Of a DNA stretch of 64,000 nt, positions 27,630-52,100 are shown piece after piece. The stretch spans positions 1,372,586-1,436,585 of the forward strand of contig NW_003314261.1 in NCBI RefSeq assembly GCF_000143415.4, given 5' to 3'. The first letter of the stretch is position 1. Every line of letters begins with the position of its first letter. This DNA comes from Selaginella moellendorffii. Its lineage: Eukaryota; Plantae; Lycopodiophyta. The notes under the pieces are model-generated. The model saw only the letters and a program-made list of their open reading frames with translations. It was not told the origin of the DNA and ran no database searches. Made by a program: the position numbers and the translations under genes.

Positions 27630-28039
27630 GTTTGCGGTATGGACTTTTTGTGATTCTCTTGTTGTTTTAGTGGTATATTGTCTACGTATCATGCCTGGCT
27701 TGTCTGGAAAAGAAATGTTTGCCTGGTAAATAAATGCCTTTTCATTGACACTCGTGTTTTCGAGAGAGTTCTTTTTCTTTTTTTCCAGTAGCAGCGTCTT
27801 CGGGAGAGTTCTTGCACCCTCTTCGGGAGAGTTCAAGCAAAAGTGACTGTAAGATTCGCTAACGTGCGTCTTTTTTATCCTTACTGTGGTTGGCACCACG
27901 TTTTCGAATGCATGCGTTTTTACAAATCACTGCGGGACAAATGTCGACGAGAATCGGATAAGATTTATAGCCAGGTTAACAGTTCTTTTGTTTCTTGTTT
28001 TCGTAAGGACCGGAGCTTGCCTTGCTTTGTTCTCGAGAG

Positions 28040-28708
28040 ATGATGCAGGCTTTCGCGAGTGTAAGTTAGTATCATCTATCAAGCCTTTGGTTTTTCTAAC
28101 TTAGTGTGCGCTTGTTTGTGATGCAGCGTTTGATCCGTGGTGTTGCCAAGAAGAGTGCAGCAGCAGCGGGGGCTCCGAGCTGGAGAAATGCTGCTACCAG
28201 TACGAGGATCAAGCGCCCTGAAGACGTTGTTCCAAATCCTTATACCGGCGACGCTGGTGTGATGAAGAGGCAGACAGCATCCGAGTACTTGCATCAGCGC
28301 GGAAGGTAGTTTTCTTTCTTCCTTCTTTTCGATTTCCCTAAGGTGGATCCACTGCACAGAGTGTACCAGGTACCGTGTAGGAAAAACGGGATGAAGATGG
28401 TAACGACCGACATCCTCCGTAGAGAGCTCCTTCCAGTGCTTCCTCTGGCGGGAATGGTGTTGCTCGCCATTGGGCTGGGGGTGTGGACGTTCTGGTGGGA
28501 GCACGTAGCCCATCCCAACGTGAGCATCACTCGCGACCTCCGGGAGAGGCTGTTCGAGATCGAGCACCCCGAGTGGGTCAAGCGCAAAGCCGCCGTCTAC
28601 CTCCAGAGCCCGCTGCGGAAGATGTCACTCGAGTGGCCAACCGCTCGCATCGCTCACATCCAGCAGGAGCCTCCGCCCCCGATCGGCCATGGCGGCCCCT
28701 TGAGCTGA
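28040..28708 (+). CDS. B12D/NDUFA4(MLRQ)-like small mitochondrial membrane protein, 3 exons
   Basis: Presequence-like MMQAFAS/RLIRGVAKK; TM LLPVLPLAGMVLLAIGLG followed by HPNVSI.R..RE...E.EHPE...A..Y...PLRK. Confidence 0.68.
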
Positions 28709-28849
28709 AGAGCTTCTTCTTCTTCTTCGTGGTAGTGTAAGTGTTTCAAGTTTTTCTTTCTGTTCTAAAGCAAAGCTCTTGTTTTGTGTGCGAAAGTATG
28801 TATATAAAAAGACGAGTTTTGGAGATCTGAAGGAGTCCGAGGAATAAGA

Positions 28850-31015
28850 TTACAAGTTTTGTTTCAGAGGAGATCTCGTTGGTTGCAACCAGTCCGGTTC
28901 TTGAGGTTGGTTATTATCGCTTTCAGTTGGCGATTTGCGGCACTTGCGACACAAAAACACGACGGAAACGAAGATGGCACAAGCGGCGACAACTCCGCCC
29001 GCAGCGATACCAGCGATTACTTTGCTCGTTCCCTTCTTTGCGGAACGAGGAGGAGGAGAAGCACTGGCTGTAGCGGCACAAGTTTCACAACATATAAAAT
29101 CCCTGATGGGCGTGGTAAAGTCGCCTCTTGGACAGATTGGAGCCAGGCTCCCACGGAAGTCACAGCTGATGGTCGCATTGGAGAGCTGCAAAATCAAAGT
29201 TCTCTCAATCTAAAAAGCAAAATCGAAGTTCCACGTAACTGTTCGAGCGAGAGGAAGAGGCTTTTGCTGTGAAGGAGGAAAGGATCGTTGAGATAAAGCT
29301 TTCTCAACCGTAGGCTGGCCAAGCTTTGCGATAAGCCCATCAGCAAGAACATCTATCGATGCAACTCCAATCAACTGTTGATTTGCATCAAAAGCTGCAT
29401 GAAGTTAAAATAATTACTAAGAAGAAGCAGACTAATAAATAATAGTTCTATACAAACCTGGAAAGATGGAAGTTGTCACATTGCCAAGGCCAGCAGAATC
29501 AGCATACAAGCTCGCCCAAACTGGTTTCTTGTTGACGGCGACAAAGCGAAGCCATGCAATGTAGTCGAAGTAGCTGTGGATCTTGAGCAGCGGGTTTTTG
29601 TCGTCACTGATGAACTCGTAGCTCATGTTGAGGCTGCTCTGCATTTGCTGGAAAGCGGCACTGTCGTTGGACGTGAAGGACCCAATTCTGTAGACGAACA
29701 CCACAACGTTTCTCGCGTTCAGCTGTGCCAAAACTGGGCTCAGTTGGGTGAAGTTGAAATTGCCAGGGGTGACAAACTGTCCATCTGTGAAGAGGATTAT
29801 GACCTGGGATTTGCCAAGTTGAAGAAACCAATGTGATTTCTTGTGATTATCACACGAAAAGCATCTTACATTCAAGTTGGAGCTGGTGTTGAAGAAATGA
29901 AGTGCTCCTTGCAGCCCATTCTTTATGTTACTGGCTGAGTTTGTAACACTTGTGTTGCTTATGGAATCTTTGAGGGATGAGATTCCAGTCAGATTCAAAG
30001 AGGTTTCCTGGACGTCAAGAACTACGGAAACCTGGAATTCAGAACCTCATGATCAGAAGTTATCCCAGTTTCTGCTGAAAAACTTAACTGGAGCTCCGAT
30101 TTTCTCACCACCGATCGTTGACACAGCCACTTGATCTCCATTAGTGAGGGTGTTTAGCAGCTGCTTAATGATGTTACTTGCAACATTAAAGCGGCTTTGG
30201 GAGGATAAAACTCCAGTGGGATTGCTCATGGAAGTGGAGGTGTCCAAGAGAATGTAGAGCGATTTTTGGATCGCCAAAGTATTGAGAAACCATGGCCTGA
30301 GCCTTGGATCGTAAAGATCACACTGCCCACTGTCGACATAGTCCTGTCAATATAAAGACATAAACTCTCGCTTGCAGGGAAGAAATGCTTATTGTGCACT
30401 TACCCGGCCCGGGTAAACATACAAGTATCCTTCAATCCCTCCAAAGAAAGCCCAGCCAACGGAAAACTTATTCGTGTTATTCCAGGCCTGTTGTAGCTTC
30501 TTGTCTAGAGATTTTTGAGCACACAAGACCGTCTGAAAATCTCGATCTTTCTCCGGGTCTTGATCGGCTGGGACTCTAGATGATCATAGCAACATCTCAA
30601 GTCAAAGCTGTACATTGACAAACTAGATACCTGAGGTATGTTTTTTGAGTTGAAACGCTTAAGCTCTGGCAAGTTCCATTTGCCGGAGACGTGCAGTCTC
30701 CATTGCGGAATACTGAAATGCAAGAGAGCTTTTGGATCTCATCCTTGGACTGCGGCCAGCAAGGGCGCCTTTTGCAAGTGTCGAGTGAGCAATCCGATAG
30801 ACTTCCTGGAGTGACAATACTCTACAAAGTTGTTTGAGATTGAGGTTCAAGAGCTTACCACAAGTATTGGCTCGATTTAAGATTGCTTGATTTGCGATTT
30901 GCTGGACCTGGAAGTCGGTCTCGTTCAGCACTGTTTCGATGTTATCTTGAGCGTTTGCTAGCAGCAAAGACAAGACTCCTAAAAAGGCGGATCTAAGCAA
31001 GAGGGAGCTCTCCAT
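28850..31015 (-). CDS. alpha2delta/CACHD1-like vWA-Cache type-I membrane protein, copy A1 (8 exons, about 590 aa, apparently intact)
   Basis: Signal peptide; RVPAD..SLDKKLQQAW..WAFFGGIEGYLYVYPG; DLYDPRLRPWF; vWA MIDAS DTSTS..IILFTDG..VFVYRIG; WASLYADSAGLG; LIGVASIDV; Cys-rich stalk, TM, short tail. All introns GT-AG and in phase. Confidence 0.85.
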
Positions 31016-31269
31016 TCGCTCAAACCTGCAAAAGTGGTGGCGTTGATTTTATCAAGCCCTCGTTGGTTCCTACCATTCCAGAAGTTACAGAAGCTGTCTT
31101 GCCTTTCGTGTTGATTTTTAGGAACCATATCCTAAACCGTGTGGAAACATCGCCCAAAGGCTGATGATGACATCTACGACATTTCTACATGTTTTTGGAC
31201 ACCGGTCATTCACTTCCATTGACTTTTTAAGGGACGAAGTCCATTGTTGCTGATGAGTTTTGAGTTTCA

Positions 31270-33454
31270 GTTGTAACCTCTGCGGGCCAGTCACCCACAC
31301 TTCTTGTTCAGCCCCGATGGGAGTTTCACTCGTGGTAGGCAAGGGGGATTTGCAGCACTTACAGTAGAAAACTACAGCAGCGGCAGCCAGAACAAGAACT
31401 GCCGCTCCCACGCAAATACCAGCAATGGCACCAACCGCCATGAAGTCTTCGAAGAATTGGTGCTGGCAACAGCACAATCGCCACAGCACATCAGCTCTGT
31501 GATCGGTGTCTGAAAATCTCTTTGCGGGCACATGGGAGTCAGCTTCCCAGTAAAACCACAGTTGATAATAGTTGCATTCGAGACCTACTGGTAATGTCAG
31601 CGATAAGTTGAAAAGCTGGGGGTTTTGTGAGTGAGAGGGAAAGGCGTCACATTCTCTGAAGAATGGAAGCTCCGTTTAGACACTGCTTCTTGAACAGCAG
31701 CGCTGCCGTGCCTGCTGATAAGCTTCTCGGCAATAATGTCAATGCATGCAACTCCGATCAAACGCTGATTTGCATCGAACGCTACAGCAGTAATCAGATG
31801 ATCAAAGGACCAAGACAAGAAAAGGAGAGCCGGTTTACCTAGGAATATTGAGCTCGTCACGTTTCCAAGCTCCGCGGCATCAACGTAAACAGGCACCCAC
31901 GTAGCACAGCAACAAAGCGAAGCCAAGCGATGTAATCAAAGTAGCTCCGAATGTTGAGCAGGGGATTTTTCTCTTCTTTCACAGCCTCGTAAGTCATGTT
32001 GAGGTTACCTTGCATCTCCTGGAAAGTGGCATCGTTGGAGGTGAAGAATCCTATCCTGTAGACGAAAACCACAACACCTTTGTCGTTGAGTTGTGCAAAG
32101 AGTGGATTCAAATCTGCAAAGTTGAAATTGCTGGCAAACTGTCCATCCGTGAAGAGAAGTATTACCTTACATTACGAGCACTGTTAGTGACAGACAAAGA
32201 AAGAGGATGATCTTTACGTTTAAGTTAGAGCTGGAATTGAAGAGATCAAGGGCCGCAGCAAGACCTTTCTTGATATCCTTGGGTGAATTGTCGACTTTGA
32301 CCTTGGCTATGGCATCCTTGAGGGACGAAATGCCAGAAGCATTGGATGATGTTTCAAGGTTTTCAAGCACGACTGAAACCTGCAAAACCAAAGCCTTAAG
32401 ATGAATCATAACTTAGACCATCGTTTAAATTACTCCAATCCCAGGACACCGCCGCCGTGCTTCTCGGAAGAATGCGAGCACATATCCGCCGATTTGGACA
32501 GCTCCCCGTGGTTGCCATAGCTCTTGGTGGCGGCCGCGGCGGCGGCCTTGCACTTGCGGTAGTATCTCGCGGGAGCGACAATAGGTCCACCACTAGTCGT
32601 TGACACTGCTATTTGGTCTCCATGTCCAGGAGTGCCTTAAGAACGCTTCTGGCAGCGGCCAGACGGCTTTGGATGACAAAGGTCCAACAAGATTTCTCAT
32701 GGACAACGATGTGTCCAAAACAATGTAGAGTGATTTCTGAACTGCCAAGGCATTCAAGTACCACGGCCTGCGTCTCGGATCATATGTGTTACAGTTTTCG
32801 TTGTCTGCATAGTCCAGTAGATTATCTATGCCTTTCATGAATTAAAAAGACGAAAACCTCGTACCCAGCTTGGATAAACGTATAAATAGCCTTCAATGCC
32901 GCCTCCGAAAAGTGCCTTTCCTGTTGCAGGCCTGTTGTAATTTGTGGTCAAGAGGTTTCTGAGCGCACAAGACCGCAGCAGTATCAGTCTCCGAAGCCAG
33001 CTCAGGTGAGACCCTGGACGTTTTAAGAAATCTCAAAAGAAAATACTAGCAAAAATGTGAGACAACCAACCTGATGTATGATCTCTCGCTAGACACGCTA
33101 ACGTAGCGACATGTTCCATTCCCGAAGCTGTGCAAGCTAGATTCTGATGTACCCCAATTCATGAGAGCTTCTGGACCCTGCGGCCTGCAGGGTTGCCTGA
33201 TGCAAGTCTCTGGCAAGCAAATCGATAGACTCCCTGCACAGCAATCATTCTTAGACTTCATGACACACGTTTGCATAGACGTGATCTAGAATGTGACCCT
33301 CACCACAAACATTCGATGGCCTGCTTTGCAATCTCTTGCACTTGCAAGTCGGTCACATCCAGCAGCTCCTCAATGTTGGTGTTCTGAGCACGGACTAGTA
33401 CACGATGTGTCCTAACAAGACGGATCCTAGAAACATCAAAAACTTGGCCTCCAT
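31270..33454 (-). pseudogene. vWA-Cache paralog B1, pseudogene
   Basis: YDPRRRPWY, DTSLS, VYVDAAELG, GVACID. Frameshifts, a 10-bp deletion near 31900, a mutated splice acceptor near 32815 and a foreign insert at 32435-32596. Confidence 0.82.
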
Positions 33455-33570
33455 GTCTAGATCTAAAGCAAATGTTGTTATAGCACGACACAGGTAGATT
33501 GAACTGGACCTTCCTGGAAACAATCCGCACCCAAGTTGGCTTGAGACCCGGTCATTGGAACCCATCGTTT

Positions 33571-33922
33571 AGTTAGGGTTGCCCAATGCCAAAAAAAGAA
33601 GCTACCTTCTATTTTCCTCATGGCAAAACACTTGAAGAAGTTCATGCTGCCAACCTCTTGCCTTTCTGGTACAGAGAAACAGCATCAAAGATGGATGCTG
33701 GAGAAGGAGGAGGCGGAGCAAGCTGATACATCACAGCCGGGATCTTGTCTTCAATCTCTAGCACTTTCCCGTAATGCCCCTTCTGGGCATATGCGTCAGC
33801 AAGGAGCTTCCAGCTGAGGAAGTTCCTAGCTGGACACTGCAGAAATGCCTCTCGAGCGCACTCGATTGGGCCAAGCATGCCGTAGCCTCTGATGACGCAG
33901 TTCCACACCCACGTCTTCTCGT
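33571..33922 (-). pseudogene. PLS-class PPR gene fragment
   Basis: TWVWNCVIRGYGMLG.IECAREAF..CPARNFLSWKLLADAYAQKGH; absent at the matching position of unit 2 (about 44820). Confidence 0.7.
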
Positions 33923-34669
33923 CTTCTCCTAGGCTTTTTTTTTTTTTTTTTGCCATGGCTGCGGCTAGACCAATCCGGGCTTGAATGCGGGACATAGGAT
34001 GCTACTTTACAGATTTCTGGACAACAAGCCGGGTTCTGAGAGAAGAAAGACGCACTTAGGAGATTTATTCAGCAACCGGGATCTCTTGTACAGTTGCTCG
34101 TAGTAAATCATAGCGATAGAAGAACTGTAAAGAGTTCCATGGCTTGCAGGGAGTTGACAATGCACGACTATTTTGGTTTTGTGTTGTCAATCCAGGTCTA
34201 ATCGAGTGCTACTACTTTGGAGGAGAAAGGGATTGCTTATAACTCCAAATTTGTCTAGAGAACAAGCCGATCTTTCTTATGAATGGAAGTTCCAGGTGAA
34301 ATCCAGATGTTGTTAAAGCAGCTATTTGAGACAAAGTTCTGTCTCGGGACGATGTTAGACACTGTTGTTTTTAACACACCCAAGAACATATCCTTACTGT
34401 GGTTGGCACCAGTTTCCGAATGCATGCGTTTTTACAAATCACAGCGGCACAAATGTCGACGAGAATGGAATACGATTGAGCTTGCCTTGCTTTGTTCTCG
34501 AGAGATGATGCAAGCTTTCGCGAGTGTAAGTTTCTACCAAGCCTTTTTAGTATGCGTGTTTGTGATGCAGCGTTTGATCCGTGGTGTTGCCAAGAAGAGT
34601 CCAGCAGCAGCGGGGGCTCCGAGCTGGAGAAATGCTGCTACCACTACGAGGATCAAGCGCCCTGAAGAC

Positions 34670-34808
34670 TGATAAGGATGAACAGGGTCTTGTTCATCAC
34701 AAGAGGCTACAAAGGAAAAACACACCCTACTCTCTCTAGTGTCCCCTAACTGCCTACCGCGCCTCTAGAGAGCTCTGGAGAAGATGCTATGCCAGCATAT
34801 TCGTATCA
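34670..34808 (-). repeat. copia 3' LTR (139 bp)
   Basis: TGATA...TATCA termini; matches 38970-39204. Confidence 0.92.
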
Positions 34809-37800
34809 CTCCCACTCGAGCACTAAGGTGCTCGCTCAAGGCTCACGCCAAGTGCGTGTACGTGTCGCTGGAACAAAGCTGGAGGTAACGCCTTGGTAAA
34901 AATATCTGCAACCTGCTCTGTTGTTCCACAATGGATGAGCTCCAAAACACACTTGATCTCGAATATAATGGAACTGCACCTGGATATGTTTGGCGCGCCC
35001 ATGAGTGCGATAGCACCCTGGTTATCGCAAAAGATAACTGTTGGCGCTAGCTGAGAATAGCCGATGCCGTCCAAGAGCTGTCGTAGCCAGCAACATTCCT
35101 TAGCTGCTTGGGTAGCTGCAACATACTCTGCTTCGGTCGACGATAACGCTATAATTCATGTGAGAGCGCCGCTGCCGAGACCAAAGATATAACCTGAGGT
35201 GGATCTCGGCTGCTCAACCTCGCCTGCAAAGTCAGCATCCGTGAAGCCAAACAGTCCCATACCTGCTGGGACTTTGGAGTACGTGAGTGCAAAATGTCTG
35301 GTCCGCTTTAAGTAGCGAAAGATACGTTTGACTGCTAACCAATGAGGAAGTCTTGGAGTCTCGAGAAACTGGGACACTGCTCCCACTGCAAGAGCTAAAT
35401 CTGGCCGTGTACAGACCATTAGGTAGACTAAGCTGCCAACCATCTGACGGTACGGTATCTGCATCTTCTCGCATTCCTCGACTGTTTGTCGAACTTGATC
35501 TTTGCTGAGATGGAGGCCGGCTTCCATAGGAGTTGACGCTTCATTCAGCTCAGCAAGATGAAACCTCTCCAAGATATCGTCAACATACTTCTGCTGAGAT
35601 AATTGTATGATGCCAGCTTGCCTGTCGCGTATAATCTCGATCCCCAAACAGTATTTCACTGGTCCAAGATCCACCATCTTAAATCGTGCTTGTAGCTCAC
35701 GCTTGAGCTGCTGCAAAGCTATGCGAGTTGGACCGACTAGTAGACAATCGTCTACATAGAGTGCAAGATAAATATATGTTGTACCTGACTTGCGAAGATA
35801 AACGTTAGAATCTGCTGAAATACTCACAAAACCGATGGAGAGTAGATAGCTGTTCATCTTCGCATACCACTGCCATATAAAGCCTTCTTAAGCTTGCACA
35901 CCTTGTGTTCCTGGTCTTTGATGACATATCCTTCTGGCTGAAGGACATAAACCTCCTCGTCAAGATCGCCATAGAGAAACGCTGTGGTGACGTCGAGCTG
36001 CTCCACTTCTAAAGTCTGCTGGGCTGCAAGATTGAGTAACAAGCGGATAGAGGCCATCTTCACCACTGGAGAAAACGTTTCATTGTAGTCCACGCCCTCA
36101 ACCTGTGAGTATCCTTTGCTACAAGTCTTGCCTTGTACTTGAGAAGTTTCTTATCAGCTCCAGTCTTGATTCGAAAAAGCCACATAATTTTGATCGGTTT
36201 CCTTCCAGGAGGTAGATCGACCAGGTCCCATGTCTCATTCTCCGTGAGAGACGAATACTCAGAATTTGCTGCTGCTTGCCACTGCTCACGCTCAGGACTG
36301 GAGAGTGCCTCACGCAAATTCTTGGGAACCAAGATATCTTGGCCTTGACAAAATAACAACTGGAAAACTGGAGAAAACGCCTGTTGCACTTCTGGAGGAG
36401 CTGCTGCATAGTAGAACGTGTTGGAACCACTTGGAGCTGTCTGGGCACGCTCCCTAGCTTGAGCTTGCTGCCGAGAAGCTCGGCGGGCAGTCTGAAAGTC
36501 AAGCCGTTCTTGAAATTGTGCCCCTGCTTCTGTGAGTGTGCGGATCCGAGTAGACCGTCTAAGCACTGGCTGTGGTGAAGGCTGAGTGCTCCCACTTAAG
36601 CCAATCTCTCCGCCGACTGGAGGAGACGTCCCGTTCTGGCCTGAAGTGTCGCTCCCACCCGTGCCAAAAATACCGGGTTGAGAGCTCCCACTCGCTTCAG
36701 CATCACTTGCCGCTGCGTCTATAGGGACGGGCTGATTGGATCCTGCTGCTGGAGCTGCAGTTGCGCTAGGGTCTTCTTCCTAAACCGTTGACGGTTGACT
36801 GGAGGATCAAGAGCGCACGGGAGATTTCTGGTTGCATACGTCCTGTTTCATCGAAGATCACATCACGACTGTGTAAGATCTTGGATGAGGACAAACTGAA
36901 GAGCTTGTAGGCCTTCATGTGATCACTGTAGCCGACTAGAACTGCCTTCACGCTGCAATCTTCAAGATTGGTGCGATGCTTCCTTGGCACAAATGCATAC
37001 GCTATGCATCCAAAAATTCGAAGATGACTGAGATCCGGTTTTCTGCCATACCAAAGCTCAAATGGTGTCTCGTCGCTCACTGCTGATGTGATCTGACGGT
37101 TTCGCAGATAAGCTGCGACTGCAACAGCTTCACACCAAAAGGACTTGGGCAAACCAGCATCTCGTAATAAGGAGCGAGCTGCTTCCTGGAGCGTTCGGTT
37201 GGCTCGTTCAGCTGTGCCATTTTGTTGCTGTGTATCTGGAACTGAATACTACCTCTCAATCCCATCTTCTTCACAATATTTGATAAAATCTTTAGAGACA
37301 TATTCTCCACCACCATCACTTCGAAATTTCCTCAGTTTCTTGCCTGTCTGCAACTCTGCTCGAGTTCTAAAAAACTGGAACTCATTGATCACCTCAGATT
37401 TGCGAGCTAGAAACTTTGCTGCGATCATCCTGCAATAATCGTCTATAAAGGTCACAAAATAGACCTTCTTGTCTCGAGAAAGTACTGGCATCGTACACAC
37501 GTCAGAGTGGACTAGCTCTAAAATCTCGGTAGCTCTTGTAGCAGCACCAGCCTTGAAAGGAAATCTGTGCTGCTTTGCGAGAACGCACGGCTCACAAAAC
37601 TTCATCTTCTGAGAAGTGATGTGAAGACCGTCAACCATGCCTGAACTCGCAAGTTGTTTAATATCCTGGTAATTCGTGTGACCAAGCCGGCGATGCCATG
37701 TCTGGAGGTCAACCGCATGCTGAGGACCTGCAAAAAGAAGCTGCTCGCTAGGCTTGACTGGATACTCCACCTCTGCATTCAGCATAACGCCTCCCACTGG

Positions 37801-39021
37801 CTATAACTGACTCGCCTCACATTATAGTGCACTGCGTCTTGGAAAAGAGAAGTTCACAATCTGTGATTTTTCCAACGGAGAAGAGTGTCATCTTGACACC
37901 AGGAACGTAGTAGACTCCACTGACTGCTACAACCTGTCCTGTGGCAAGTCGAACCTTGAACTCCACACACACTGTGTGAGTAGTCATCGCCGAGGTAAAT
38001 TCGCTTCCCGTCTGGAACGTCTTCTAAATGCGAGAAAAGGCTTTGGAGATGAGTCATATGCTGATTGGCTCCACTGTCAATCCAGATCACCTCTGTTCTT
38101 GGAGTGTTGGGTGCAAGGGAATTTGACTCTGCTACAGCTTGACCCATGAACAAGCTACCATCTGTGCTCGTGCGTAATTGGCAACTTGCTTCCCCTTCCT
38201 GATTTCCTTCCGGAACTTGGCCGCTTCATCTGTACAGTCCCGGGCGAAGTGTCCTGGCTTTTTACAGATATTACAGAGACCGTTATTTTTGTGCTTCTTG
38301 TTTCTCTTTGGCTCGTTTTGACCTTCTTGTTTGCGTTCTTTGGCAGCATCCTCCTGGCGCGGCCCTAGCCTGTCCCAGATTGAGACCTTGGCCTTAGAAC
38401 CAGCAAACATAGCCAAATCGCGAGGGATTTCTTCCAGAAACTGAGATCCTCCTAGCAAGGTTTCCAGTGCTAACATCTCGTTAACGACCTCATCAAAGGT
38501 TTTGGTGGCCACATGTCCAGCGGCAGCAAGTTGAAACGCTGTTGGAATGCCCTTGAGAAACACTGTGACAAGCTCACTGTCGTCCACTTTGGTGGGAGAT
38601 TGAAGGGTGTCGATCTGCTTGGCTGTATCCTTCAAACGACTTGCATAATCTTGAATGGACTCATCCTTCTTCTTGACCATGCTGCCGAACTTGGTTTTCA
38701 TCTCAATTAGATTGGTCTCGTTGGTTCGGCCAAGCACTGTCTTTTCCAAGGATTCCAAGTGTTCGAGTGTTTTGTCTGTTCCACTCTTTCTCGGGTGCAA
38801 CCTCTGTCGCTGCCGGACATGCCTCTGTCCTAGAGACTATATCCCAAAGGTTCTTCTCCATGAAGAAAAACTGCATCTGAGTTCGCCATCCATGGAAATC
38901 TCTGCCATCAAAAACTTCCAAAACGTCTTTGTCTGAAGCCATCTCAGAAAAACTAGTGCTCCGATACCATGACCAGGGTCTTGTTCATCACAAGAGGCTA
39001 CAAAGGAAAAACACATCTAGT

Positions 39022-39141
39022 TGTTAGAACTAAGCTGAACATGCACACAACCAGGGCAGCTAGCTCAGTGGTAGAGCACCTGGCACCGGTGTAGGAGGTC
39101 CTGGGTTCAATCCCCGGCCTGTCCAGATCCATTTTCCAACA
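39022..39141 (+). mobile_element. 120-bp solo-LTR-like element carrying a tRNA-derived Pol III unit
   Basis: TGTTAGAA...TTCCAACA imperfect inverted termini; flanks CTAGT/CTAGC (TSD-like); absent from the sister LTR. Confidence 0.6.
39054..39125 (+). tRNA. tRNA-like pseudogene, probably Ala-derived
   Basis: A-box TAGCTCAGTGGTAGAGC, B-box GGTTCAATCCC; cloverleaf with G3-U70 and A73; defective anticodon arm; TTTT at 39132-39135. Confidence 0.7.
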
Positions 39142-39486
39142 CTAGCTGCCTACCGCGCCTCTAGAGAGCTCTGGAGAATATGCTATGCCAGCATATTCGT
39201 ATCAAAGACGTTGTTCCAAATCCTTACACCAGCGATGCTGGTGTGATGAAGAGGGAGACAGCATCCGAGTACTTGCATCAGCGCGGAAGGTAGTTTTCTT
39301 TCTTCCTTGTTTTCGTTTTCCTCTAAGGTGGATCCACTGCACAGAGTGTACCAGGTATCGTGCAGGAAAAACGGGATGAAGATGGTAACGACCGACATCC
39401 TTCGCGGAGAACTCCTTCCGGTGCTTCCTCTGGCGGGAATGGTGTTGCTCGCCATTGAGCTGGGGGTGTGGACGTTCTGGTGGGAG

Positions 39487-39823
39487 AAAATTTGCATCCT
39501 GGATTTAAGGTGCGAGAGATGACTTCACTCGTAGCACAGTCGCGGTACTAACGTCGCACAGAGCTCTGTAGGATCTAACGTTCGTCTTGCGTACCAGGTT
39601 GAAATGCAGGCAAGCTTTCCTCGTCTCACTGGCTGGATTTCATGCTCGCAGTCGGCAAAGAAGACGGTGTCCTTGAAGCCGGGGTCAAAGTGACGTTGCC
39701 ATGCTGAACCACGAGAGCACCTCCCTGGCAACCATGCAGGGAGCTGGAGTATGAGAGTGGCAAACATGCTAGGCTCCTTCTTGATGTCTCGGTATAGCTT
39801 GAAGTGTCCATCTTGTGAAAGAA
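39487..39823 (-). pseudogene. Inserted fragment of a 2OG-Fe(II) oxygenase gene
   Basis: DGHFKLYRDIKKEPSMFATLILQLPA / GCQGGALVVQHG / FFADCEHEIQPVRRG in shifting frames; no TSD. Confidence 0.72.
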
Positions 39824-40160
39824 CACGTAGCCCATCCCAACGTGAGCATCACTCGCGACCTCCGGGAGAGGCTGTTCGAGATCGAGCACCCCGAGTGGTC
39901 AAGCGCAAAGCCGCCGTCTACCTCCAGAGCCCGCTGCGGAAGATGTCACTCGAGTGGCCAACCGCTCGCATCGCTCACATCCAGCAGGAGCCTCCGCCCC
40001 CGATCGGCCATGGCGGCCCCTTGAGCTGAAGAGCTTCTTCTTCTTCTTCGTGGTAGTGTAAGTCTTTCAAGTTTTTCTTTCTGTTCTAAAGCAAAGCTCT
40101 TGTTTTGTGTGCGAAAGTATGTATATAAAAAGACGAGTTTTGGAGATCTGAAGGAGTCGA

Positions 40161-42331
40161 TTACAAGTTTTGTTTCAGAGGAGATCTCGTTGGTTCCAAC
40201 CAGTCCGGTTCTTGAGGTTGGTCATTATCGCTTTCAGTTGGAGATTTGCGGCACTTACGACACAAAAACACGGCGGAAACGAAGATGGCACAAACGGCGA
40301 CCACTCCGCCCGCAGCGATACCAGCGATTACTTTACCCGTTGGCTTCTTTGGGGAACGATGAGGAGGAGGAGGAGGAGGAGCACTGGCTGTAGCGGCACA
40401 AGCTCCACAACATATAAAATCCCTGATGGGCGTGGAAAGGTTGCCTCTTGGACAGATTGGAACCAGGCTACCACGGAAGTCACAGCTGATGGTCGCATTG
40501 GAGAGCTGCAAAATCAAAGTTCTCTCAATCTAAAAAGCAAAATAGAAGTTCCAAAAGTTTGTACGTAACTGTTTGAGCGAGAGGAAGTGGCTTTTGCAGT
40601 GAAGGAACAAAGTGTGATCGTTCAGATATAGCTGTCTCAACTGCAGGCTGGCCAAACTCCGCGACAAGCCCATCAGTAAGAACATCTATCGATGCAACTC
40701 CAATTAGCTGTTGATTTGCATCAAAAGCTGCATGCAATTAAAATAAGCAGAGGAATAAATAATAGTACTATACAAACCTGGAAAGATGGAAGTTGTGACA
40801 TTGCCAAGGCCAGCAGAATCGGCATACAGACTCGCCCAAATCGGTTTCTTGTTGACAGCGACAAAGCGAAGCCATGCAATGTAGTCGAAGTAGCTGTGGA
40901 TCTTGAGCAGCGGGTTTTTGTCGTCACTGATGACCTCGTAGCTCATGTTGAGGCTGCTCTGCATTTGCTGGAAAGTGGCATCGTTGGACGTGAAGGACCC
41001 GATTCTGTAGACGAACACCACAACGTTTCTCGCGTTCAGCTGTGCTAAAACTGGGCTCAGTTGGGTGAAGTTGAAATTGCCAGGGATGACAAGCTGTCCA
41101 TCTGTGAAGAGGGTTATGACCTGGGATTTGCCAAGTTGAAGAAACCAATGTGATTTCTTGTGATTATCACACGAAAAGCATCTTACATTCAAGTTGGAGC
41201 TGGTGTTGAAGAAATCAAGTGCCGCTTGCAGCCCATTCTTTATGTTACTGGCTGAGTTTGTAACACTTGTGTTGCTTATGGAATCTTTGAGGGATGAGAT
41301 TCCAGCCAGATACAAAGAGGTTTCCTGGACGTCAAGAACTACGGAAACCTGGAATTCAGAACCTCATAATCAGAAATTATCCTAGTTTCTGATGAAAACT
41401 TAACTGGAGCTCCGATTTTCTCACCACCGATCGTTGACACAGCCACTTGATCTCCATTAGTGAGAGTGTTTAGCAGCTGGTTAATGATGTTATTTGCAAC
41501 ATTAAAGCGGGTTTGGGAGGATAAAACACCAGTGGGATTGCTCATGGAAGTGGAGGTGTCCAAGAGAATGTAGAGCGATTTTTGGACCGCCAAAGTATTG
41601 AGAAACCATGGCCTGAGCCTTGGATCATAAAGATCACACTGCCCACTGTCGACATAGTCCTGTCAATATAAAGACATAAACTCTCGCTTGCAGGGAAGAA
41701 ATGCTTATTGTACACTTACCCGGCCCGGGTAAACATACAAGTATCCTTCAATCCCTCCAAAGAAAGCCCAGCCAAGGGAAAACTTCTTCGTGTTATTCCA
41801 GGCCTGTTGTAGCTTCTTGTCTAGAGATTTTTGAGCACACAAGACCGTCTGAAAATCTCGATCTTTCTCCGGGTCTTGATCGGGTGGGACTCTAGATGAT
41901 CATAGCAACATCTCAAGTCAAAGCTGTACATTGACAAGCCAGATACCTGAGGTATGTTTTTTGAGTTGAAACGCTTAAGCTCTGGCAAGTTCCATTTGCC
42001 GGAGACGTGCAGTCTCCATTGCGGAATACTTGAACGCAAGAGAGCTTTTGGATCTCATCCTTGGACTGCGGCCAGCAAGGGCGCCTTTTGCAAGTGTCTA
42101 GTGAGCAATCCGATAGACTTCCTGGAGTGACAATACTCTACAAAGTTGTTTGAGCTTGAGGTTCAAGAGCTTACCACAAGTATTGGCTCGATTTAAGATT
42201 GCTTGATTCGCGATTTGCTGGACCTGGAAGTCGGTCTCGTTCAGCACTGTTTCGATGTTATCTTGAGCGTTTGCTAGCAGCAAAGACAAGACTCCTAAAA
42301 AGGCGGATCTAAGCAAGAGGGAGCTCTCCAT
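40161..42331 (-). CDS. alpha2delta/CACHD1-like vWA-Cache type-I membrane protein, copy A2 (apparently intact)
   Basis: Same 8-exon structure and motifs as A1 (YDPRLRPWF, DTSTS, TDG, LYADS, GVASIDV, TM). Confidence 0.85.
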
Positions 42332-42630
42332 TCGCTCAAACCTGCAAAAGTGGTGGCGTTGATTTTATCAAGCCCTCGTTGGTTCCTGGAAGCACGAACC
42401 ACTATCGTGTTGATTTTTATCTGATATTTAGCTATCCTAAACCGTGTGGACTTCTACGTATTGCCAACCACCGCCCAAAGGCTGATGATGACATCTCCTG
42501 ACTACATTTCTACATTTTTTTGGACACCGGGCTAGACTGTTCATTCACTTGTCCATTGTTGCTGATGAGTTTAATCGCAGGCTGGGCCAAGTTTCAGTTG
42601 TAAATGAAGTAAACGAAGCAAGGCTCTCTT

Positions 42631-44727
42631 TCAATCAGTTATGTTATTAGGCGACCTCTGCGGCGATGGGCCTGTCACCCACACTTCTTGTTCAGCCCCG
42701 ATGGGAGTTTCACTCGTGGTAGGCGAGGGGGATTTGCAGCACTTACAGTAGAGAACTACAGCAGCGGCAGCCAGAACAAGAACTGCCGCTCCCACGCAAA
42801 TACCAGCAATGGCACCAACCGCCAATGAAGTCTTCGAAGAATTGGTGCTGGCAACAGCACAATCGCCACAGCACATGAACTCTGTGATCGGTGTCGAAAA
42901 ATCTCTTTGCGGGCAAATGGGAGTCAGCTTCCCAGTAAAACCACATTTGATAATAGTTGCATTCGAGACCTACTGGTAATGTCAGCGATAAGTTGAAAAG
43001 CTGGGGGTTTTGTGGACTTAACTGGTTGAGTGAGAGGGAGAGGCTTCACATTCTCTGAAGAATGGAAGCTCCGTTTAGACACTGCTTCTTGAACAGCAGC
43101 GCTGCCGAGCCTGCTGATAAGTTTCTCGGCAATAAGGTCAATGCATGCAACTCCGATCAAACGCTGATTTGCATCGAACGCTACAGCAGTAATCAGATTA
43201 TCAAGGAACCAAGACAAGAAAAGGAGCGCCGGTTTACCTGGGAATATTGAGCTCGTCACGTTTCCAAGTTCGGCGGCCTCAACGTAAACAGGCACCCACG
43301 TAGGCTTTTTGTTCACGGCAACAAAGCGAAGCCAAGCGATGTAATCAAGTAGCTCCGAATGTTGAGCAGGGGATTTTTCTCTTCTTTCACAGCCTCGTAA
43401 GTCATGTTGAGGTTATCTTGCATCTCCTGGAAAGTGGCATCGTTGGAGGTGAAGAATCCTATCCTGTAGACGAAAACCACAACACCTTTGTCGTTGAGTT
43501 GTGCAAAGAGTGGATTCAAATCTGTGAAGTTGAAATTGCTGGCAAACTGTCCATCCGTGAAGAGAAGTATTACCTTACATTACAAGCACTGTGAGTGACA
43601 GACAAAGAAAGAGGATGATCTTTACGTTTAAGTTAGAGCTGGAATTGAAGAAATCAAGGGCCGCAGCAAGACCTTTCTTGATATCCGTGGGTAAATTGTC
43701 GACTTTGACCTTGGCTATGGCATCCTTGAGGGACGAAATGCCAGAAGCATTGGATGATGTTTCAAGGTTTTCAAGCACGACTGAAACCTGCAAAACCAAA
43801 GCTCTAAGATGAATCATAACTTGGAAAATTATCTTTTAAATTACTGGAGCAGCAATATGTCGATCATTAATCATTGACACTATTCGTGAGAGTGTCCAGG
43901 AGTGCCTTAAGAACGTTTTTGGCACCGGCCAGACGGCTTTGAGATGACAAAGGCTCTCATGGACAACGATGTGTCCAAAACAATGTAGAGTGATTTCTGA
44001 ACTGCCAAGGCATTCAAGTACCACGGCCTGCGTCTCGGATCATACGTGTTACATTTTTCGTTGTCTGCATAGTCCTGTAGATTATCTATGCCTTTCATGA
44101 ATTAAAATCAAATGAAAGACGAAAACCTCGTACCCGGCTTGGATAAACGTATAAATAGCCTTCAATGCCGCCTCCGAAAAGTGCCTTTCCTTCATAGATG
44201 CTGTTGCAGGCCTGTTGTAATTTGTGGTCAAGAGGTTTCTGAGCGCACAAGACCGCAGCAGTATCAGTCTCTGAAGCCAGCTCGGGTGAGACCCTGGACG
44301 TTTTAAGAAATCTCAAAAGAAAATACTAGCAAAAATGTGAGACAACCAACCTGATGTATGATCTCTCGCTAGACACGCTAACGTAGCGACATGTTCCATT
44401 CCCGAAGCTGTGCAAGCTAGATTCTGATGTACCCCAATGCATGAGAGCTTCTGGATCTCATCCCGGGACTGCGGCCTGCAGGGTTGCCTGATGCAAGTCT
44501 CTGGCAAGCAAGTCGATAGACTCCCTGCACAGCAATCATTCTTAGACTTCATGACAGAAGTTTGTATAGACATGATCTAGAATGTGACCCTCACCACAAA
44601 CATTCGATGGCCTGCTTTGCAATCTCTTGCACTTGCAAGTCGGTCACATCCAGCAGCTCCTCAATGTTGGTGTTCTGAGCACGGACTAGTAGCACGAAGT
44701 GTCCTACATAAAAAACTTGGCCTCCAT
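42631..44727 (-). pseudogene. vWA-Cache paralog B2, pseudogene
   Basis: YDPRRRPWY, DTSLS, VYVEAAELG, GVACID. Deletion in the signal-peptide exon, deletion after the MIDAS, 1-nt deletion near 43347. Confidence 0.82.
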
Positions 44728-45219
44728 GTCTAGGACACAGGTAGATTGAACTGGACCTTCCTGGAAACAATCCGCACCCAAGCTGACTTGAGACCCAATG
44801 ATCTTCCAACTCATCGTTTTTGCAGTTCCTCCTAGGCTTTTTTTTTTTTTTTTTTTGCCATGGCTGCGGCTAGACCAATCCCGGCTTGAATGCGGGACAT
44901 TGGATGCTATTTTACAGATTTCTGGACAACAAGCCGGGTTCTGGGAGAACCTAGGAGATTTATTCAGCAACCGGGAATTGCTCGTGGATTGAAAGTAGTA
45001 AATCATAGCGATAGAAGAGCTGTAAAGAGTTCCATGGCTTGCAGGGAGTTGACAATACATCATCAATGAGCGACTGTTTTGGTTTTGTGTTGTCAATCCA
45101 GGTCTAATCGAGTGCTACTACTTTGGAGGAGAAAGGGATTGCTTATAACTACAAATTTGTCTAGAGAACAAGCCGGTGTGGCATGATCTTTCTTATGAAT
45201 GGAAGTTCCTGGTGAAAAT

Positions 45220-46756
45220 TCAGATGTTGATTAAAGCAGCTATTTGAGACGAAGTTCTGTCAGTTAATTCGGTGAATGTTATAGACTGTTTAGACATTTG
45301 CAAGCTCCTGTTCATGTTGTGGAGCTTGGTGAGATTGATGTTGTGAAGCTGGAGCTGGACCTGCGTCAATACTAGAGTCGTTTTGAGGCAGTTCTTGCTG
45401 CTGCACAAGACCAACAGTAAGCATTCATGAATTCTGATGTTCCACACCTGTCTGGCTTGTTCTGCTTCTAACTTCTTCTTAGTAGCTCTTCCATTGGCGT
45501 AATTCACCACCAGAGTCCCAAATATCAGAAGCGCTCCTCCAACGCAAGTAAACACACTGGTAAGACACATACCTGCTGTGTGAATTAAGAGAACTTTGCA
45601 TTGAATTAATTTTGCTTGTACCCGGGTGCTGAGGAGACGTGAATCCCCCAGCCGATGAGAGATCCAATCACAGGTTCCAGCGTGACAGCCATGGAAATAA
45701 TCAAAGGCCCTGTGTACTTGACAACATAGTTCAAACCCGTGTGACCGATTAGACCAGGGCCGATTGCCAAAAAAAGCGTTGGAGCCCAGAAACCTGCAAA
45801 TAACTCATAAGCAACTATATCTTTTGATTGAGTTCTCCAAACCTCGCCTCGTCCATGCAAAAGGTCCACCAATCTTCCACGATCTGGAATGGTAGTTCTC
45901 CATAAACTCACAAGCGATGCCCAGAATGAGAGCTCCTCCAGCCGTTACAGGGAAGGCATAGAGATAGAGCGGCATCCAACCTGGTGAAATGACAAACAAT
46001 ACCCACAGAAAGAATGAAATCCAACACTTGTAAAGATCATCCAAGTTTTGCAAAGAAGAAGAGAAAGATAAGTCTAGAGCTTCACTTCTGAGATTGTTCC
46101 CAGCAAACATGTAGCCTACAAACGCAACAGCCGCCAGGAAAGCCATCAAATCCCCCAGGAAAGTGATGCCTTTGTCACCATCGGACTTGCTAGCAAATGC
46201 GATGATCAAAACCCCAGCAAAACCCAAGAACACCCCGGCGTTCTCTCCTTTGCTCAGGGGCTTACAGCGCAGCCAGGATAGAACAGCGATGATGAGCGGA
46301 GGCATCGAAACAAAGAGGAGGCTATGTGGAAGGGATGTGTGATCCAGTGACCATACCTGGATATCGAATTGTAAGCGTGAACCCCCTTCTCGATCTAAGC
46401 AATACAATTCTATACCCATAGGCCGAAGTGCAAGGCTATTGCAAGAGCACTGATTCCAAGCACGCAAAGAGGTCGCCATGTGAAGAACATACATCGCTTC
46501 TGGGGAGAGAGGCGGCACCAGTCCCAAATGAATCCAGGCAGAAGGATCATTGCCGTGACTTGCAATCTCCATGCTGCATTGGAGATTGGAGCGGCACGCT
46601 TCATCAGTTTGGTCACCTAGATAGAAACATCGCGTGATCAAGAGAAAAGTTTTCAGTGAATTGACTGATTAGAAAACTCACTGCCCCGGCGGATGATACA
46701 GCCACAACCGCACAGACCAGCACCAGCCACACGTACCATGGAGTCCGGGCAGCCAT
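45220..46756 (-). CDS. EamA/DMT-superfamily transporter (two EamA repeats), multi-exon
   Basis: MAARTPWYVWLVLVCAVVAVSSAG; AAWRL; HFGLW/VWSLDHTSL.HSLL; GDLMAFLAA; GHTGLNYVVKY..PL.IS...LEPVIGSLIGW. Confidence 0.85.
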
Positions 46757-48578: not shown

Positions 48579-49017
48579 TGTCAAGACCCCCAACAAGATG
48601 AAGATTGGAAAATGCTAAAGACAAAGAGAAAAAGCTAGTGAAAACAAAGAAGAGGCCTTAGACTAGTGTTGATTCAGATTGTGGAGAAATGGAACAAGGC
48701 TAACTTATATATACTATAGGTTAATGAAGCTTCACCACTCTTGGATCGAGGACGGCCTAAATATAGCTGAGGTCGAGGAGGCGCCACATCATCATCAGGA
48801 ATGTGGCTCGAGACTCAGGAATCGGGAAGTGTCTCGAGACTCAGGAATCGGGAAGTGTCTCGAGAGTCAGGAATAGGGAAGTGTCTCGAGACTCAGGAAT
48901 CGGGAAGTGTCTCGAGAGTCAGGAATAGGGAAGTGTCTCGAGACTCAGGAATGTGGTCTGCAGGTCAGGAATCCGGCGAGAGTCAGGAATGTGGCAAGAA
49001 TTGGGGGATTCCTGACA
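48579..49017 (-). repeat. Chromovirus 3' LTR with 26-bp tandem array
   Basis: TGTCA...TGACA termini; ctcgagactcaggaatcgggaagtgt repeated about 5.5 times (48807-48952). Confidence 0.95.
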
Positions 49018-49151
49018 GCACCCCCTCCTCAAGAACGAGTGGAACGAGGATGTGAACGACAACGAAGAGGAGGATGAGATGAGCGGCGAGGGATGGGAGA
49101 GGGAGAAAAAAAATGAGGACTGGGACGAGAAGGATAGCGGTGGTGGAAGTC

Positions 49152-52100
49152 CTAAACAAGGTCAGGAGAATGAATCAGGTTGTCCGCAGGTTCCCAAGTG
49201 CGTTCCTCAGGTCCGTAACCCTTCCAGTCCACCAGATAGTAGAGTTTAGACCGTGAAATCTTGGAATCAAGGATGTCCTGAACCTCATACTTAGACCCAT
49301 CCTCGAGTTGCACTGGTGGAGGCGGAGGAATGACCCGATTTGGAATAGGACTGGGAATATAAGGCTCAAGGAGAGAGGAGTGAAAAACGGGGTGAATTTG
49401 ATATGAGGAGGGAAGTGCAAGGCGATAAGTGACAGGATTAATGATGGCAGTGATAGGGAAAGGACCAAGGCGTTTGAAATCGAGTTTTGGACAGGGCCTG
49501 GTGGTGGAGATATTTCGCCTGAGGAGCCAAACTTTATCCCCGATATTGTAAGGGGGACAATCCTGACGATGGACATTGGCAAATGTTTTATGAGATTCCT
49601 GAGCACGATGGAGGTGGAAGGAGATGGAGTTGTGGATTTCCTGGAGGTTGGAGATAAATGCCTCAGAGCGGGGATTTGAACGAAAGGATTCAGATGGAGA
49701 AGGAAGTGAGAGATTGAATCGGGGATTTCGGCCAGAGTTTGCAAAGAAGGGGGAAACTCGAAGAGAGGAGTGAACAGAGTTGTTATAGGAAAACTCAGCA
49801 AGGGGAAGGATATCGAACCAGTTATCCTGATGATAGTTGATGAAGCACCTCAAGAATTGTTCCAACGTCTGAATCGTTCGCTCGGATCGCCCATCAGTTT
49901 GAGGATGATATGCCGAAGAGAGGTTGGCCTTCACTCCAAGCAACTGCAAAAACCGTTGCCAGAAATGAGAGATGAACTGAGGCCCCCGATCCGAAACCAC
50001 ATCTGTAGGAATCCCATGAAGTCGGAAAATTTCCCTGAATACCAGTTTTGCCACGTCCTCGCCCAAAAACTCCTTGGTACATGGCAAGAAGTGCGCCATC
50101 TTTGTGAAGCGATCCACCACGACTAAAATGTTGTTGAAGCCTCCAGAACTCGGAAGATCACTCAAGAAATCCATGGAGATGGATTCCCAAGGACCTGAAG
50201 GGACCGGAAGGGAACGAAGCAAACCTGAAGGAAGGTGGCGAGGTACCTTATTCCGAGCACAAGTGTCACAGGAGGTAACAAAAGCTTTGATGTAGTCGTC
50301 CATGTGAGGCCACCAAAAGTCCCGTGCAACTAGCTCATAGGTTTTCGCAATGCCGAAGTGACTAGCAGTCGGGCTATCGTGGCACGCCATCAGGACCAAC
50401 CTTCGAGCATCACCTTCAGGAACGTAAAGCTGCTCCCCACGATACAATAAGCCATCTAAGAACTCGAACTCGTCAAATCGCCGGCAGTCGGGAGTCACTG
50501 GGTGTCTAGCCTGAAGATGGGGGAAAATGTCGCTAGCGAGATCATCGGATTGAAGATCGTTTCTGATTGCATCCATCAAGGAGGAGTCCTGAGGGGCCAA
50601 GGAAATTGCCATAACTTGAAGCCGATCAGGACCGAGGATAACTTGATCCTGTTGATCGAAGGCAGGATTACCAGGCCTGAGACTGAGATAGGAGCGCCTT
50701 GAAAGAGCATCAGGAAGGCCTTGAAACTTTCCAGGTCTGTACTTGATAACAAAGTCAAACCGACTCAGGAATTGTGCCCACCTTGCTTGACGACGGCTTA
50801 AAACTCGGGAAGTGGCAAAGTACTCGAGATTTTTGTGATCCGTCCAGACTGTTGTTTGATGGCTCGCCCCCTCCAAGAAACGGCGCCACTCTCCAAAGGA
50901 ATCCACGATGGCAAGGAGCTCCTTGTCGTGGATTTCGTAATTGATCTCCGCAGGGTGGAATTTCCGAGAATGGAAAGCGACCGGATGAAGTTCGTGATCC
51001 GCTCCGAGTTGAGACAGCACAACACCAATGGCAAAGTCGGAGGCATCAGCCTCGATGAAGAAAGGTTGTGAGGAATCAGCATGGATCAAGACAGGAGCAG
51101 AACTGAAGGCCGCCTTGAGTGTGTCGAAAGCCTGCTGGGCAGCAGCAGACCAAGAGAAGGGAACATCCTTGCGAGTGAGATGTGTGAGAGGAAGGACAAT
51201 GTCAGAGTATTGATCAATGAATTTGCGGTAGAAGTTGGCGAAGCCAAGGAAAACCTGAACGTCTGACATTGATTGTGGAGGCTCCCATTCGAGAATAGTC
51301 TTGACTTTAGCAGGATCCATCGTGATACCCTCAGGAGTGACAATGTACCCAAGGAACTCCACAGACTGCTGATCAAAGGAACATTTCTCAAGCTTCGCGT
51401 ATAGGCCGTGTTCTCGTAGCTTCGCTAGCACCTTGCAAACATGTTCGTCATGCTCCTCCTGAGTTTTTGAGTAGATGAGGATGTCATCGAGGTAGACGAT
51501 CACCATCTGATCAAGAAACTCCCAAAAAACGTCGTTCGCCATGTGTTGGAAAACCGCTGGAGCATTTGTCAAGCCAAATGGCATGACAGTGTACTCGAAG
51601 TGGCCATAGCGGGTTCGGAACGCAGTCTTCCATTCATCACCAGGCCGGATCCGGATCAGGTTGTATGCTCCACGGAGGTTGATCTTGGTGAAGAAGCGGG
51701 CACCACCAAGGCGTTCCAACAGGTCCGAGATCAGGGGCAGCGGATAACGGTTCCGAACAGTCACCTTGTTCAAACCTCGGTAGTCGATGACTAGCCGCAA
51801 GCTCCCATCCTTCTTCTTGACAAAGAAGACAAGCGCTCCAGCCGGGGATTGTGAATGCTGAATGTAGCCCGAGGCAAGGTTCTCATCCACGTACTCTTTG
51901 AGGGCCTTAAGCTCGGATGGGGATAACCCGTAGATAGGCCCCCACGGAGGTGACGCTCCTTCCTGTAAATCAATGGGACAATCATAAGGCCGATGAACAG
52001 GCAGTACACTAGCTTTTTTCTTGTCAAACACATCCCCAAAATCATGATACTTCTCAGGAAGACTGACAGGAGAAACATGCAAAGCAAAAAGAAAAAGAGG

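Follow-up and report, generated by a model that had tools for sequence, protein, structure and literature searches.

Two intact Cache-VWA surface protein genes in a tandem array of Selaginella moellendorffii are homologous to the first dCache_1-VWA module of alpha2delta

Introduction

The amino-acid motif of dCache_1 domains comprises, in the bacterial sensor PctA, residues Y121, R126 and W128, which bind the carboxylate of the ligand, and Y144 and D173, which bind its amine (Gumerov et al. 2022, PNAS; PMC8915833). The same study described dCache_1AA proteins with a VWA insertion, single-dCache forms included, in Archaeplastida, none of them in angiosperms, and reported fusions to Ser/Thr kinases in Streptophyta. 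In the Cav (voltage-gated calcium) channel subunit alpha2delta-1 the equivalent residues are Y238, R243, W245, Y452 and D493, and 13 residues of the pocket that binds gabapentin and leucine have been listed (Chen et al., gabapentin-structure preprint). Land plants are reported to lack Cav channels (PMC11085791), a statement of the literature and not of a search of the Selaginella genome itself. How plants sense extracellular amino acids by means other than GLR channels is largely open.

Here we describe an array of four related genes, A1, B1, A2 and B2, in a 64,000-nucleotide stretch of Selaginella moellendorffii DNA (contig NW_003314261.1), referred to as the window. A1 and A2 each encode a type-I membrane glycoprotein whose ectodomain is one VWA-interrupted Cache (PAS-like) module, and the Cache-VWA arrangement of both is homologous to the first dCache_1-VWA module of alpha2delta and CACHD1. 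They belong to the land-plant branch of the family described as "single dCache_1AA with VWA insertion" in non-vertebrate eukaryotes, and what is new here is a set of well-documented members of a class already known, not a new class. The original prediction, which was made from the DNA sequence alone, implied more novelty than this; the protein class is in the 2022 survey, and NCBI already names a Selaginella paralogue outside the window (C type) "voltage-dependent calcium channel subunit alpha-2/delta-4." A literature search found no paper studying any plant member. As the best explanation of the whole we suggest, as somewhat probable on balance, that A1 and A2 are surface proteins that sense an apoplastic amino acid or an analogue and signal through a partner; the binding of a ligand and the existence of a partner are both inferred.

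Results

Structure and transcription of the A genes

A tandem family had been predicted at positions 28850–44727, and the four minus-strand paralogues located there form two copies of an A-B unit with a Copia element between them (Table 1). In a self-comparison, a unit of ~6.3 kb at 28013–34343 recurs at 39205–45261 with 88–95% identity. The eight-exon model of A1 was built by hand, and the A2 model is its projection onto the second copy. All A1 introns are GT-AG and the reading frame is uninterrupted; A2 has the same exon structure. Each of the two models has exactly the sequence of a database protein (P0001 and P0040, respectively); NCBI lists these as uncharacterized proteins LOC9633548 and LOC9663133 of S. 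moellendorffii.

Expression was assessed with contigs of four runs from four studies, placed on positions 28700–33700; the RNA label of these runs is only a guess. In contigs from all four studies the seven A1 introns are skipped at the predicted junctions (29185/29240, 29394/29458, 29803/29870, 30031/30089, 30343/30404, 30575/30631 and 30805/30859), the skipped segments read CT..AC on the plus strand, and one contig of 2,682 nt covers all eight exons. Because all seven introns are missing with precision from four independent data sets, as in cDNA but not in genomic DNA, the contigs are taken to be cDNA, and the eight-exon structure of the original prediction agrees with them at every modeled junction. 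A copies were assembled at a depth of 20–118 in the four transcriptome-like runs. Of the 24 listed differences between one spliced contig (X3) and A1, 21 have the A2 base in X3, and therefore A2-type transcripts are also made; other contigs resemble additional alleles. Both genes, A1 and A2, are intact, are spliced and are transcribed.

The N terminus of A1 is hydrophobic and signal peptide-like and is followed by seven Cys within residues 52–98; the C-terminal part has five Cys within residues 482–510, a transmembrane segment at ~530–553 according to hydropathy, and a tail of 32 residues. The protein holds eleven N-x-S/T sequons. Pfam places VWA at residues 197–375, and every motif that the first reading of the DNA had listed is present: WAFFGG..YPGR (152–168), YDPRLRPWF (179–187), DTSTS (202–206), TDG (313–315), WASLYAD (403–409) and GVASIDV (432–438). 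A signal peptide, an ectodomain, a single transmembrane helix and a short tail, with no kinase match, give A1 the topology of a plant receptor-like protein (RLP), also as proposed. In the last block of the family alignment, the tail carries a motif of the form acidic-W-hydrophobic-x-P/G in the A, C and B copies (B read through), in Ceratodon and in one Marchantia paleacea protein, with the forms DWLQP, DWVIP, VWVTGP, HWLANLQP and SWAAP; the A1 tail comprises residues 554–585 (positions 28850–28948). The moss and liverwort bearers of the motif, one each, are kinase-less forms. It is possible that the motif is a docking or sorting signal.

Homology to alpha2delta and CACHD1

With the whole of A1, Pfam returned VWA alone (E = 1e-11), and single exons likewise gave VWA only; VWA_N, dCache_1 and MCP-like_PDC_1 matched weakly and in relatives only. 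The domain search suggested with the original prediction was therefore positive on A1 for VWA and negative for VWA_N and dCache_1. A family profile, made from an alignment of 18 members and searched against the PDB, matched the alpha2delta-1 chains with E = 1.5e-46 over profile positions 101–452, which comprise the VWA_N region, VWA and the post-VWA Cache strands, and matched CACHD1 with E = 8.7e-26. As a single sequence, A1 matched alpha2delta-1 with E = 7e-14. Exon 4 alone has alpha2delta-1 as its top PDB match (E = 7e-4), with DLYDPRLRPWF..DTSTS opposite DLYDVRRRPWY..DVSGS; exon 6 alone and exon 7 alone gave no relevant PDB sequence match. The exon 6 region aligns to alpha2delta-1 WTNVYLDALELG, and in exon 7 the profile alignment places LiGVaaId opposite ILGVMGVD of alpha2delta-1. 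The pre-VWA and post-VWA halves of the profile separately match the bacterial amino-acid dCache_1 sensors PctA and Tlp3 at ~1e-6. The VWA domain sits inside a Cache/dCache_1 module, its flanks aligning to the VWA_N and Cache parts of alpha2delta and to the halves of the bacterial dCache_1.

An AlphaFold2 model of A1 has a predicted template-modeling score (pTM) of 0.70 and a confident core at residues 100–460. Foldseek ranked alpha2delta-1 first (E = 2e-19), followed by CACHD1 (1e-11) and by generic VWA domains at 1e-7 or weaker. In VIA-align the top eleven entries were alpha2delta-1, with Z scores of 27.5–29.2 and 406–423 residues aligned; CACHD1 had a Z score of 24, and plain VWA domains reached at most 20.8 over ~180 residues. 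From the difference between 406–423 and ~180 aligned residues it follows that ~240 non-VWA residues superpose on alpha2delta-1. In the ESM Atlas the model matched an alpha2delta cluster with a TM score of 0.60 and also diatom proteins of 699 residues with the same shape. The predicted homology to the first dCache_1-VWA module is supported by sequence profile and fold alike.

The architecture of A1 is reduced

A1 has no second dCache and neither a VGCC_alpha2 nor a delta part; Pfam gives no VGCC_alpha2 match, no alignment extends past profile position 452, and alpha2delta-1 aligns over residues ~132–476 only. The half-length minimal architecture that had been claimed is thus what the 585-residue protein has. 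From the N terminus, the model comprises a long helix, a low-confidence Cys-rich region (61–101), two helices and three strands (122–169), the motif loop, VWA (195–396), three strands (402–439), two helices, a second low-confidence Cys-rich region (467–537) and the transmembrane helix. It contains one confident PAS-like sheet (strands 153–169 and 402–439) with stalk helices, which is the ligand-binding module; the places where a proximal module is expected, 61–101 and 467–537, are Cys-rich and have a predicted local distance difference test (pLDDT) value below 50. The two Cys-rich regions are conserved, and together they may stand in for the membrane-proximal module.

That A1 is a true alpha2delta subunit, as the NCBI name of the C paralogue implies, was ruled out on architecture, because A1 has 585 residues and neither VGCC_alpha2 nor two nested dCache domains, whereas the subunit has the order VWA_N-VWA-Cache-VGCC_alpha2, two nested dCache domains and ~1,000–1,100 residues. 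CACHD1 is also a poor description: A1 has no two-dCache or CACHD1_C Pfam match, and the CACHD1 clusters of the Atlas have 1,100–1,300 residues. A looser version, in which A1 and A2 are auxiliary or trafficking subunits of a non-Cav plant channel such as GLR, CNGC or OSCA and still act as alpha2delta-like chaperones, now for a different pore, seems to us improbable. The homologues alpha2delta and CACHD1 both modulate the surface expression of channels, and the similarity-based NCBI name of the C paralogue agrees with such a role; however, A1 lacks the second dCache and the delta region, land plants lack Cav channels, the relatives fused to Ser/Thr kinases favor receptor-kinase signaling over association with a channel, and no channel gene lies beside the array in the window.

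The amino-acid motif and the MIDAS

At the sequence level the amino-acid motif of A1 is complete: Y179, R184, W186, Y407 and D437 correspond to the five alpha2delta-1 residues given above. Among the 13 listed pocket residues these and W152, D409 and T418 (W207, D454 and T463 in alpha2delta-1) are the same, and F154, V164, Y170, S410 and A411 replace V209, Y219, W225, A455 and L456. The eight identities thus include every polar anchor, and the five differences are at positions that line the side chain. Y407 and D437 are 29 residues apart, which is inside the published range of 27–34. R184, W186 and Y407 are invariant among the 18 relatives from plants and protists, and Y179 is Y or F; at the D437 position 15 relatives have a residue, which is D in 12. 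The motif residues probably form one cavity, as judged from homology and the global fold match and not from measured distances.

The metal ion-dependent adhesion site (MIDAS) of A1 is intact (D202, S204, S206 and D314, with S287 in the place of Thr; DTSTS...TDG), so that both elements of the original prediction, a split amino-acid motif and a MIDAS of the form DxSxS/TDG, are present in the alignments and the family profile. An intact MIDAS also allows a quite different role. A1 and A2 might be protein-binding receptors or adhesion proteins in which the MIDAS engages a protein or cell-wall partner at an acidic residue, as in alpha2delta with Cav alpha1, or in which the ectodomain bridges receptors, as in CACHD1-FZD5-LRP6, with the Cache module serving as a scaffold and its pocket empty or constitutively filled. 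The DxSxS...S...D site is perfect in the Selaginella A and C copies, and the closest solved structures after alpha2delta are the CACHD1-FZD5-LRP6 complexes; CACHD1 itself lacks most of the key gabapentin-binding residues (gabapentin-structure preprint) and still forms receptor complexes. In most bryophyte relatives, however, the MIDAS is degenerate (DxGxS/T/P/Q), whereas R184, W186 and Y407 are invariant across the plant family, which suggests that constraint acts on the pocket and not on the MIDAS. We consider such a protein-binding role unlikely.

The B copies are pseudogenes

B1 and B2 are 93% identical to each other and are both distant from A. They share an exon 2 frameshift between ..NLACT and NGTCRYVSVSS.., and each has between four and six lesions of its own. 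In B1, a 1-nt deletion in exon 1 ends translation after 19 codons, there are 11-nt deletions in exons 2 and 3, exons 4 and 8 have each lost 1 nt, and the donor of intron 7 is gone with a deletion of 14 nt. In B2, a 19-nt deletion in exon 1 leads to a stop after MEAKFFM, exon 4 has 11-nt and 4-nt indels, and exon 6 has a 1-nt deletion. Contig coverage of B1 is thin and mostly unspliced, and independent contigs repeat the exon 1–3 lesions without gaps. B1 and B2 are dead copies that contribute nothing. The original prediction had listed the B copies, with YDPRRRPWY, beside the A copies; only the A copies, with YDPRLRPWF, are intact. Because the exon 2 frameshift is common to B1 and B2, the B lineage was broken before the A-B unit was duplicated.

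A maximum likelihood tree was calculated; from Selaginella it included A1, A2, the B pseudogenes, the C-type paralogue and a third A-like gene from another place on the scaffold. Pseudogenes were read through with X at the breaks, and no rows were dropped. All Selaginella copies form one clade with 100/100 support, inside which A is separated from B plus C. The expansion is therefore lineage-specific, and the predicted description as birth and death is fair: with two copies alive, two dead and retroelements present, the array is an ordinary case of this kind of evolution. Between A1 and A2 the synonymous divergence (dS) is 0.067 and the nonsynonymous divergence (dN) is 0.036, giving a dN/dS of 0.54.

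These values could also mean that the family is decaying and dispensable in this lineage, with A copies that are open and transcribed yet drifting toward the fate of B. Two of the four copies are dead, the common frameshift dates the death of B before the duplication, the dN/dS is as stated, and the array is located among retroelements. Neither A copy, however, has lost any of the eight exons, a splice site or a motif residue; both were assembled at the depths given above in four transcriptome-like runs, and the family has been kept from liverworts to a conifer. We give little credence to decay as the explanation.

Distribution of the family

An exhaustive HMMER search with one segment of 204 residues found 39 clusters at E <= 0.001 among 1.84 billion representatives. 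The named relatives are from the liverworts Marchantia polymorpha, M. paleacea and Riccia, the mosses Ceratodon and Physcomitrium, the fern ally Psilotum and the conifer Cryptomeria. Fusion of the ectodomain to a kinase of the receptor-like kinase (RLK) type occurs in Physcomitrium and Riccia fluitans. The homologue search for the family alignment added one nematode alpha2delta-like protein and missed known members.

The C-type paralogue (P0065) has 589 residues, is 53% identical to A1, and carries YDPRKRPWY and DTSSS. Its locus (L001, 10001–12135) is on GL377565.1, at ~1.46 Mb. It is solitary, with no other family member within 10 kb on either side, and adjoins fasciclin/amidase and OHCU-decarboxylase/transthyretin genes.

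Other features of the locus

The Ty1/copia element between the two A-B units has gag, zf-CCHC, integrase and RVT_2 Pfam domains on broken minus-strand open reading frames (ORFs) and is bounded by very short direct repeats that resemble long terminal repeats (34678–34808 and 38969–39204); ARAGORN placed a tRNA-Arg(CCG) at 39054–39125 within the right-hand repeat. A repeated element of a few hundred bases at 28013–28501, 34478–34669 and 39205–39486 borders each A-B unit and adjoins the Copia element. It has an ORF without a Pfam match, and it may have mediated the segmental duplication of the A-B unit. The foreign fragment in intron 4 of B1 (Table 1), which B2 lacks, is matched in all four runs by high-depth contigs that match the fragment alone and have flanks without a match in the window, so that it resembles part of an abundant transcript that was captured from another location; neither Rfam nor Pfam gave a match for it.

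Beyond the array, a Ty3/gypsy element of the chromovirus type at 48579–54284 has direct repeats of 440 nt (48579–49018 and 53845–54284) that are 97.5% identical and a polyprotein ORF of 1,238 residues at 49152–52868 on the minus strand, with protease, reverse transcriptase, RNase H, integrase and chromodomain. This element probably inserted not long ago. Upstream, single-ORF matches identify a 3-ketoacyl-CoA synthase of the FAE1/KCS type (8049–9713), a cytochrome P450 (16179–17762) and a GINT1/GT64 glycosyltransferase (18895–20601), with no channel or kinase among these neighbors.

Table 1. Coordinates of the A-B array, the A1 exons and the inserted sequences in the window
Feature	Position	Strand	Description
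A1 gene (LOC9633548)	28850..31015	-	8 exons, 585 residues, intact, expressed
A1 exon 1	30859..31015	-	
A1 exon 2	30631..30805	-	
A1 exon 3	30404..30575	-	
A1 exon 4	30089..30343	-	YDPRLRPWF (Y179, R184, W186), N-terminal half of amino-acid motif; MIDAS DTSTS (D202, S204, S206)
A1 exon 5	29870..30031	-	
A1 exon 6	29458..29803	-	End of VWA (TDG, D314); first post-VWA Cache strand WASLYAD (Y407, D409)
A1 exon 7	29240..29394	-	LIGVASIDV; D437, counterpart of alpha2delta-1 D493 and PctA D173
A1 exon 8	28850..29185	-	Cys-rich stalk C482–C510, transmembrane helix ~530–553 (533–555 in model), cytoplasmic tail of 32 residues
B1 pseudogene	31118..33454	-	B type; ~64% DNA identity to A
Foreign fragment in B1 intron 4	32435..32575		GC-rich, 141 nt; gap in B1/B2 alignment
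Degenerate Ty1/copia retroelement	34678..39204	-	Between the A-B units; Pfam domains on fragmented ORFs
A2 gene (LOC9663133)	40161..42331	-	8 exons, 588 residues, intact, expressed
B2 pseudogene	42631..44727	-	~64% identical to A; frameshift common with B1 plus own lesions

Discussion

If A1 and A2 sense an amino acid, the ligand of the Cache pocket would be an apoplastic alpha-amino acid in free form or a close analogue with an amine and a carboxylate, with the carboxylate held by R184, Y179 and W186 and the amine by D437 and Y407. Side-chain specificity should be unlike that of alpha2delta-1, given the five substitutions among the lining residues (V209 to F, Y219 to V, W225 to Y, A455 to S and L456 to A). 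As A1 carries no kinase and Cav channels are absent from land plants, transmission of the signal would depend on a partner, for which a receptor kinase or co-receptor is the most plausible candidate. Contact with this partner might be made by the MIDAS face, by the stalk together with the transmembrane helix, or by the W-x-x-P motif that is conserved in the tail. The kinase-fused moss and liverwort relatives may indicate the type of pathway.

Several points weigh against this proposal. VWA_N, dCache_1 and MCP-like_PDC_1 are not called on A1 by Pfam, and for none of the plant members has a ligand, a partner or a phenotype been described. CACHD1 is a Cache-VWA ectodomain that is able to work by protein-protein contacts alone. 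Position 187 of A1 is F and not Y; the corresponding Y129 of PctA has been proposed by other authors as a further binding determinant (reference 14 of PMC8915833). In alpha2delta-3/4, which are insensitive to gabapentin, V209Y is reported to occupy some of the pocket (gabapentin-structure preprint), and F154 may do much the same in A1. There is no kinase-fused Selaginella member among the 39 matching clusters, and the dN/dS of 0.54 together with the death of the B lineage indicates that constraint on the family in the Selaginella genome is not tight.

A broader scheme, which we put forward tentatively and regard as rather doubtful, is that non-flowering land plants perceive apoplastic amino acids or an amine-carboxylate signal through alpha2delta-type Cache-VWA receptors in RLK and RLP forms. 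This system would be distinct from the GLR channels, with an origin in early eukaryotes and a loss in angiosperms. The Selaginella A proteins would then be the ligand-binding RLP arm, docking a kinase through the W-x-x-P tail or the MIDAS face.

A1 and A2 are plant members of the one amino-acid-binding module whose known range extends from bacteria to humans. Their ligand anchors are preserved, and with no Cav channel in the lineage these proteins cannot act as Cav subunits. The relatives with a kinase fusion include orthologues in Physcomitrium patens (XP_024368104 and XP_024373479), which, like Marchantia, another source of orthologues, is genetically tractable. The value of the finding is tempered by the published presence of the family in non-angiosperm plants and by an automatic annotation that had caught the similarity.

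Among the known systems, the closest is the single dCache_1AA-VWA family (PMC8915833), which shares with A1 the VWA-split Cache, the full motif, the extracellular location, the occurrence in Archaeplastida and the absence from angiosperms. The Selaginella genes differ in being kinase-less, in forming a tandem array with pseudogenes, and in having a Cys-rich stalk and not a confidently predicted second PAS-like module in the membrane-proximal region. Plant RLPs that signal through co-receptor kinases have the same signal peptide, ectodomain, single transmembrane helix and short tail, and have paralogous or orthologous RLK forms, but the ectodomain of A1 is Cache-VWA and not LRR, LysM or malectin, and it has no known co-receptor. 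The bacterial sensors PctA and Tlp3 (PDB 5LTX and 4XMQ) have the same Y-x4-R-x-W...Y...D anchors as the plant Cache, whereas they lack the VWA insertion and have a membrane-proximal PAS module and a chemoreceptor output. CACHD1 (PDB 8S7C and 9EQ6) resembles A1 in its Cache-VWA ectodomain, its single transmembrane helix with a cytoplasmic tail and its channel-independent receptor role, but has two dCache domains and CACHD1_C, with the amino-acid motif in its second dCache (PMC8915833). Cav alpha2delta-1 (CACNA2D1; PDB 7VFS, 8FD7 and 9VLG) has the same order of VWA_N-like half, VWA and Cache half, the motif and the DxSxS MIDAS. A1 is half its length, with a transmembrane helix and tail in place of the second dCache, VGCC_alpha2 and the delta peptide; it differs at 5 of the 13 pocket-lining residues, and the Cav alpha1 partner of alpha2delta-1 has no counterpart in land plants.

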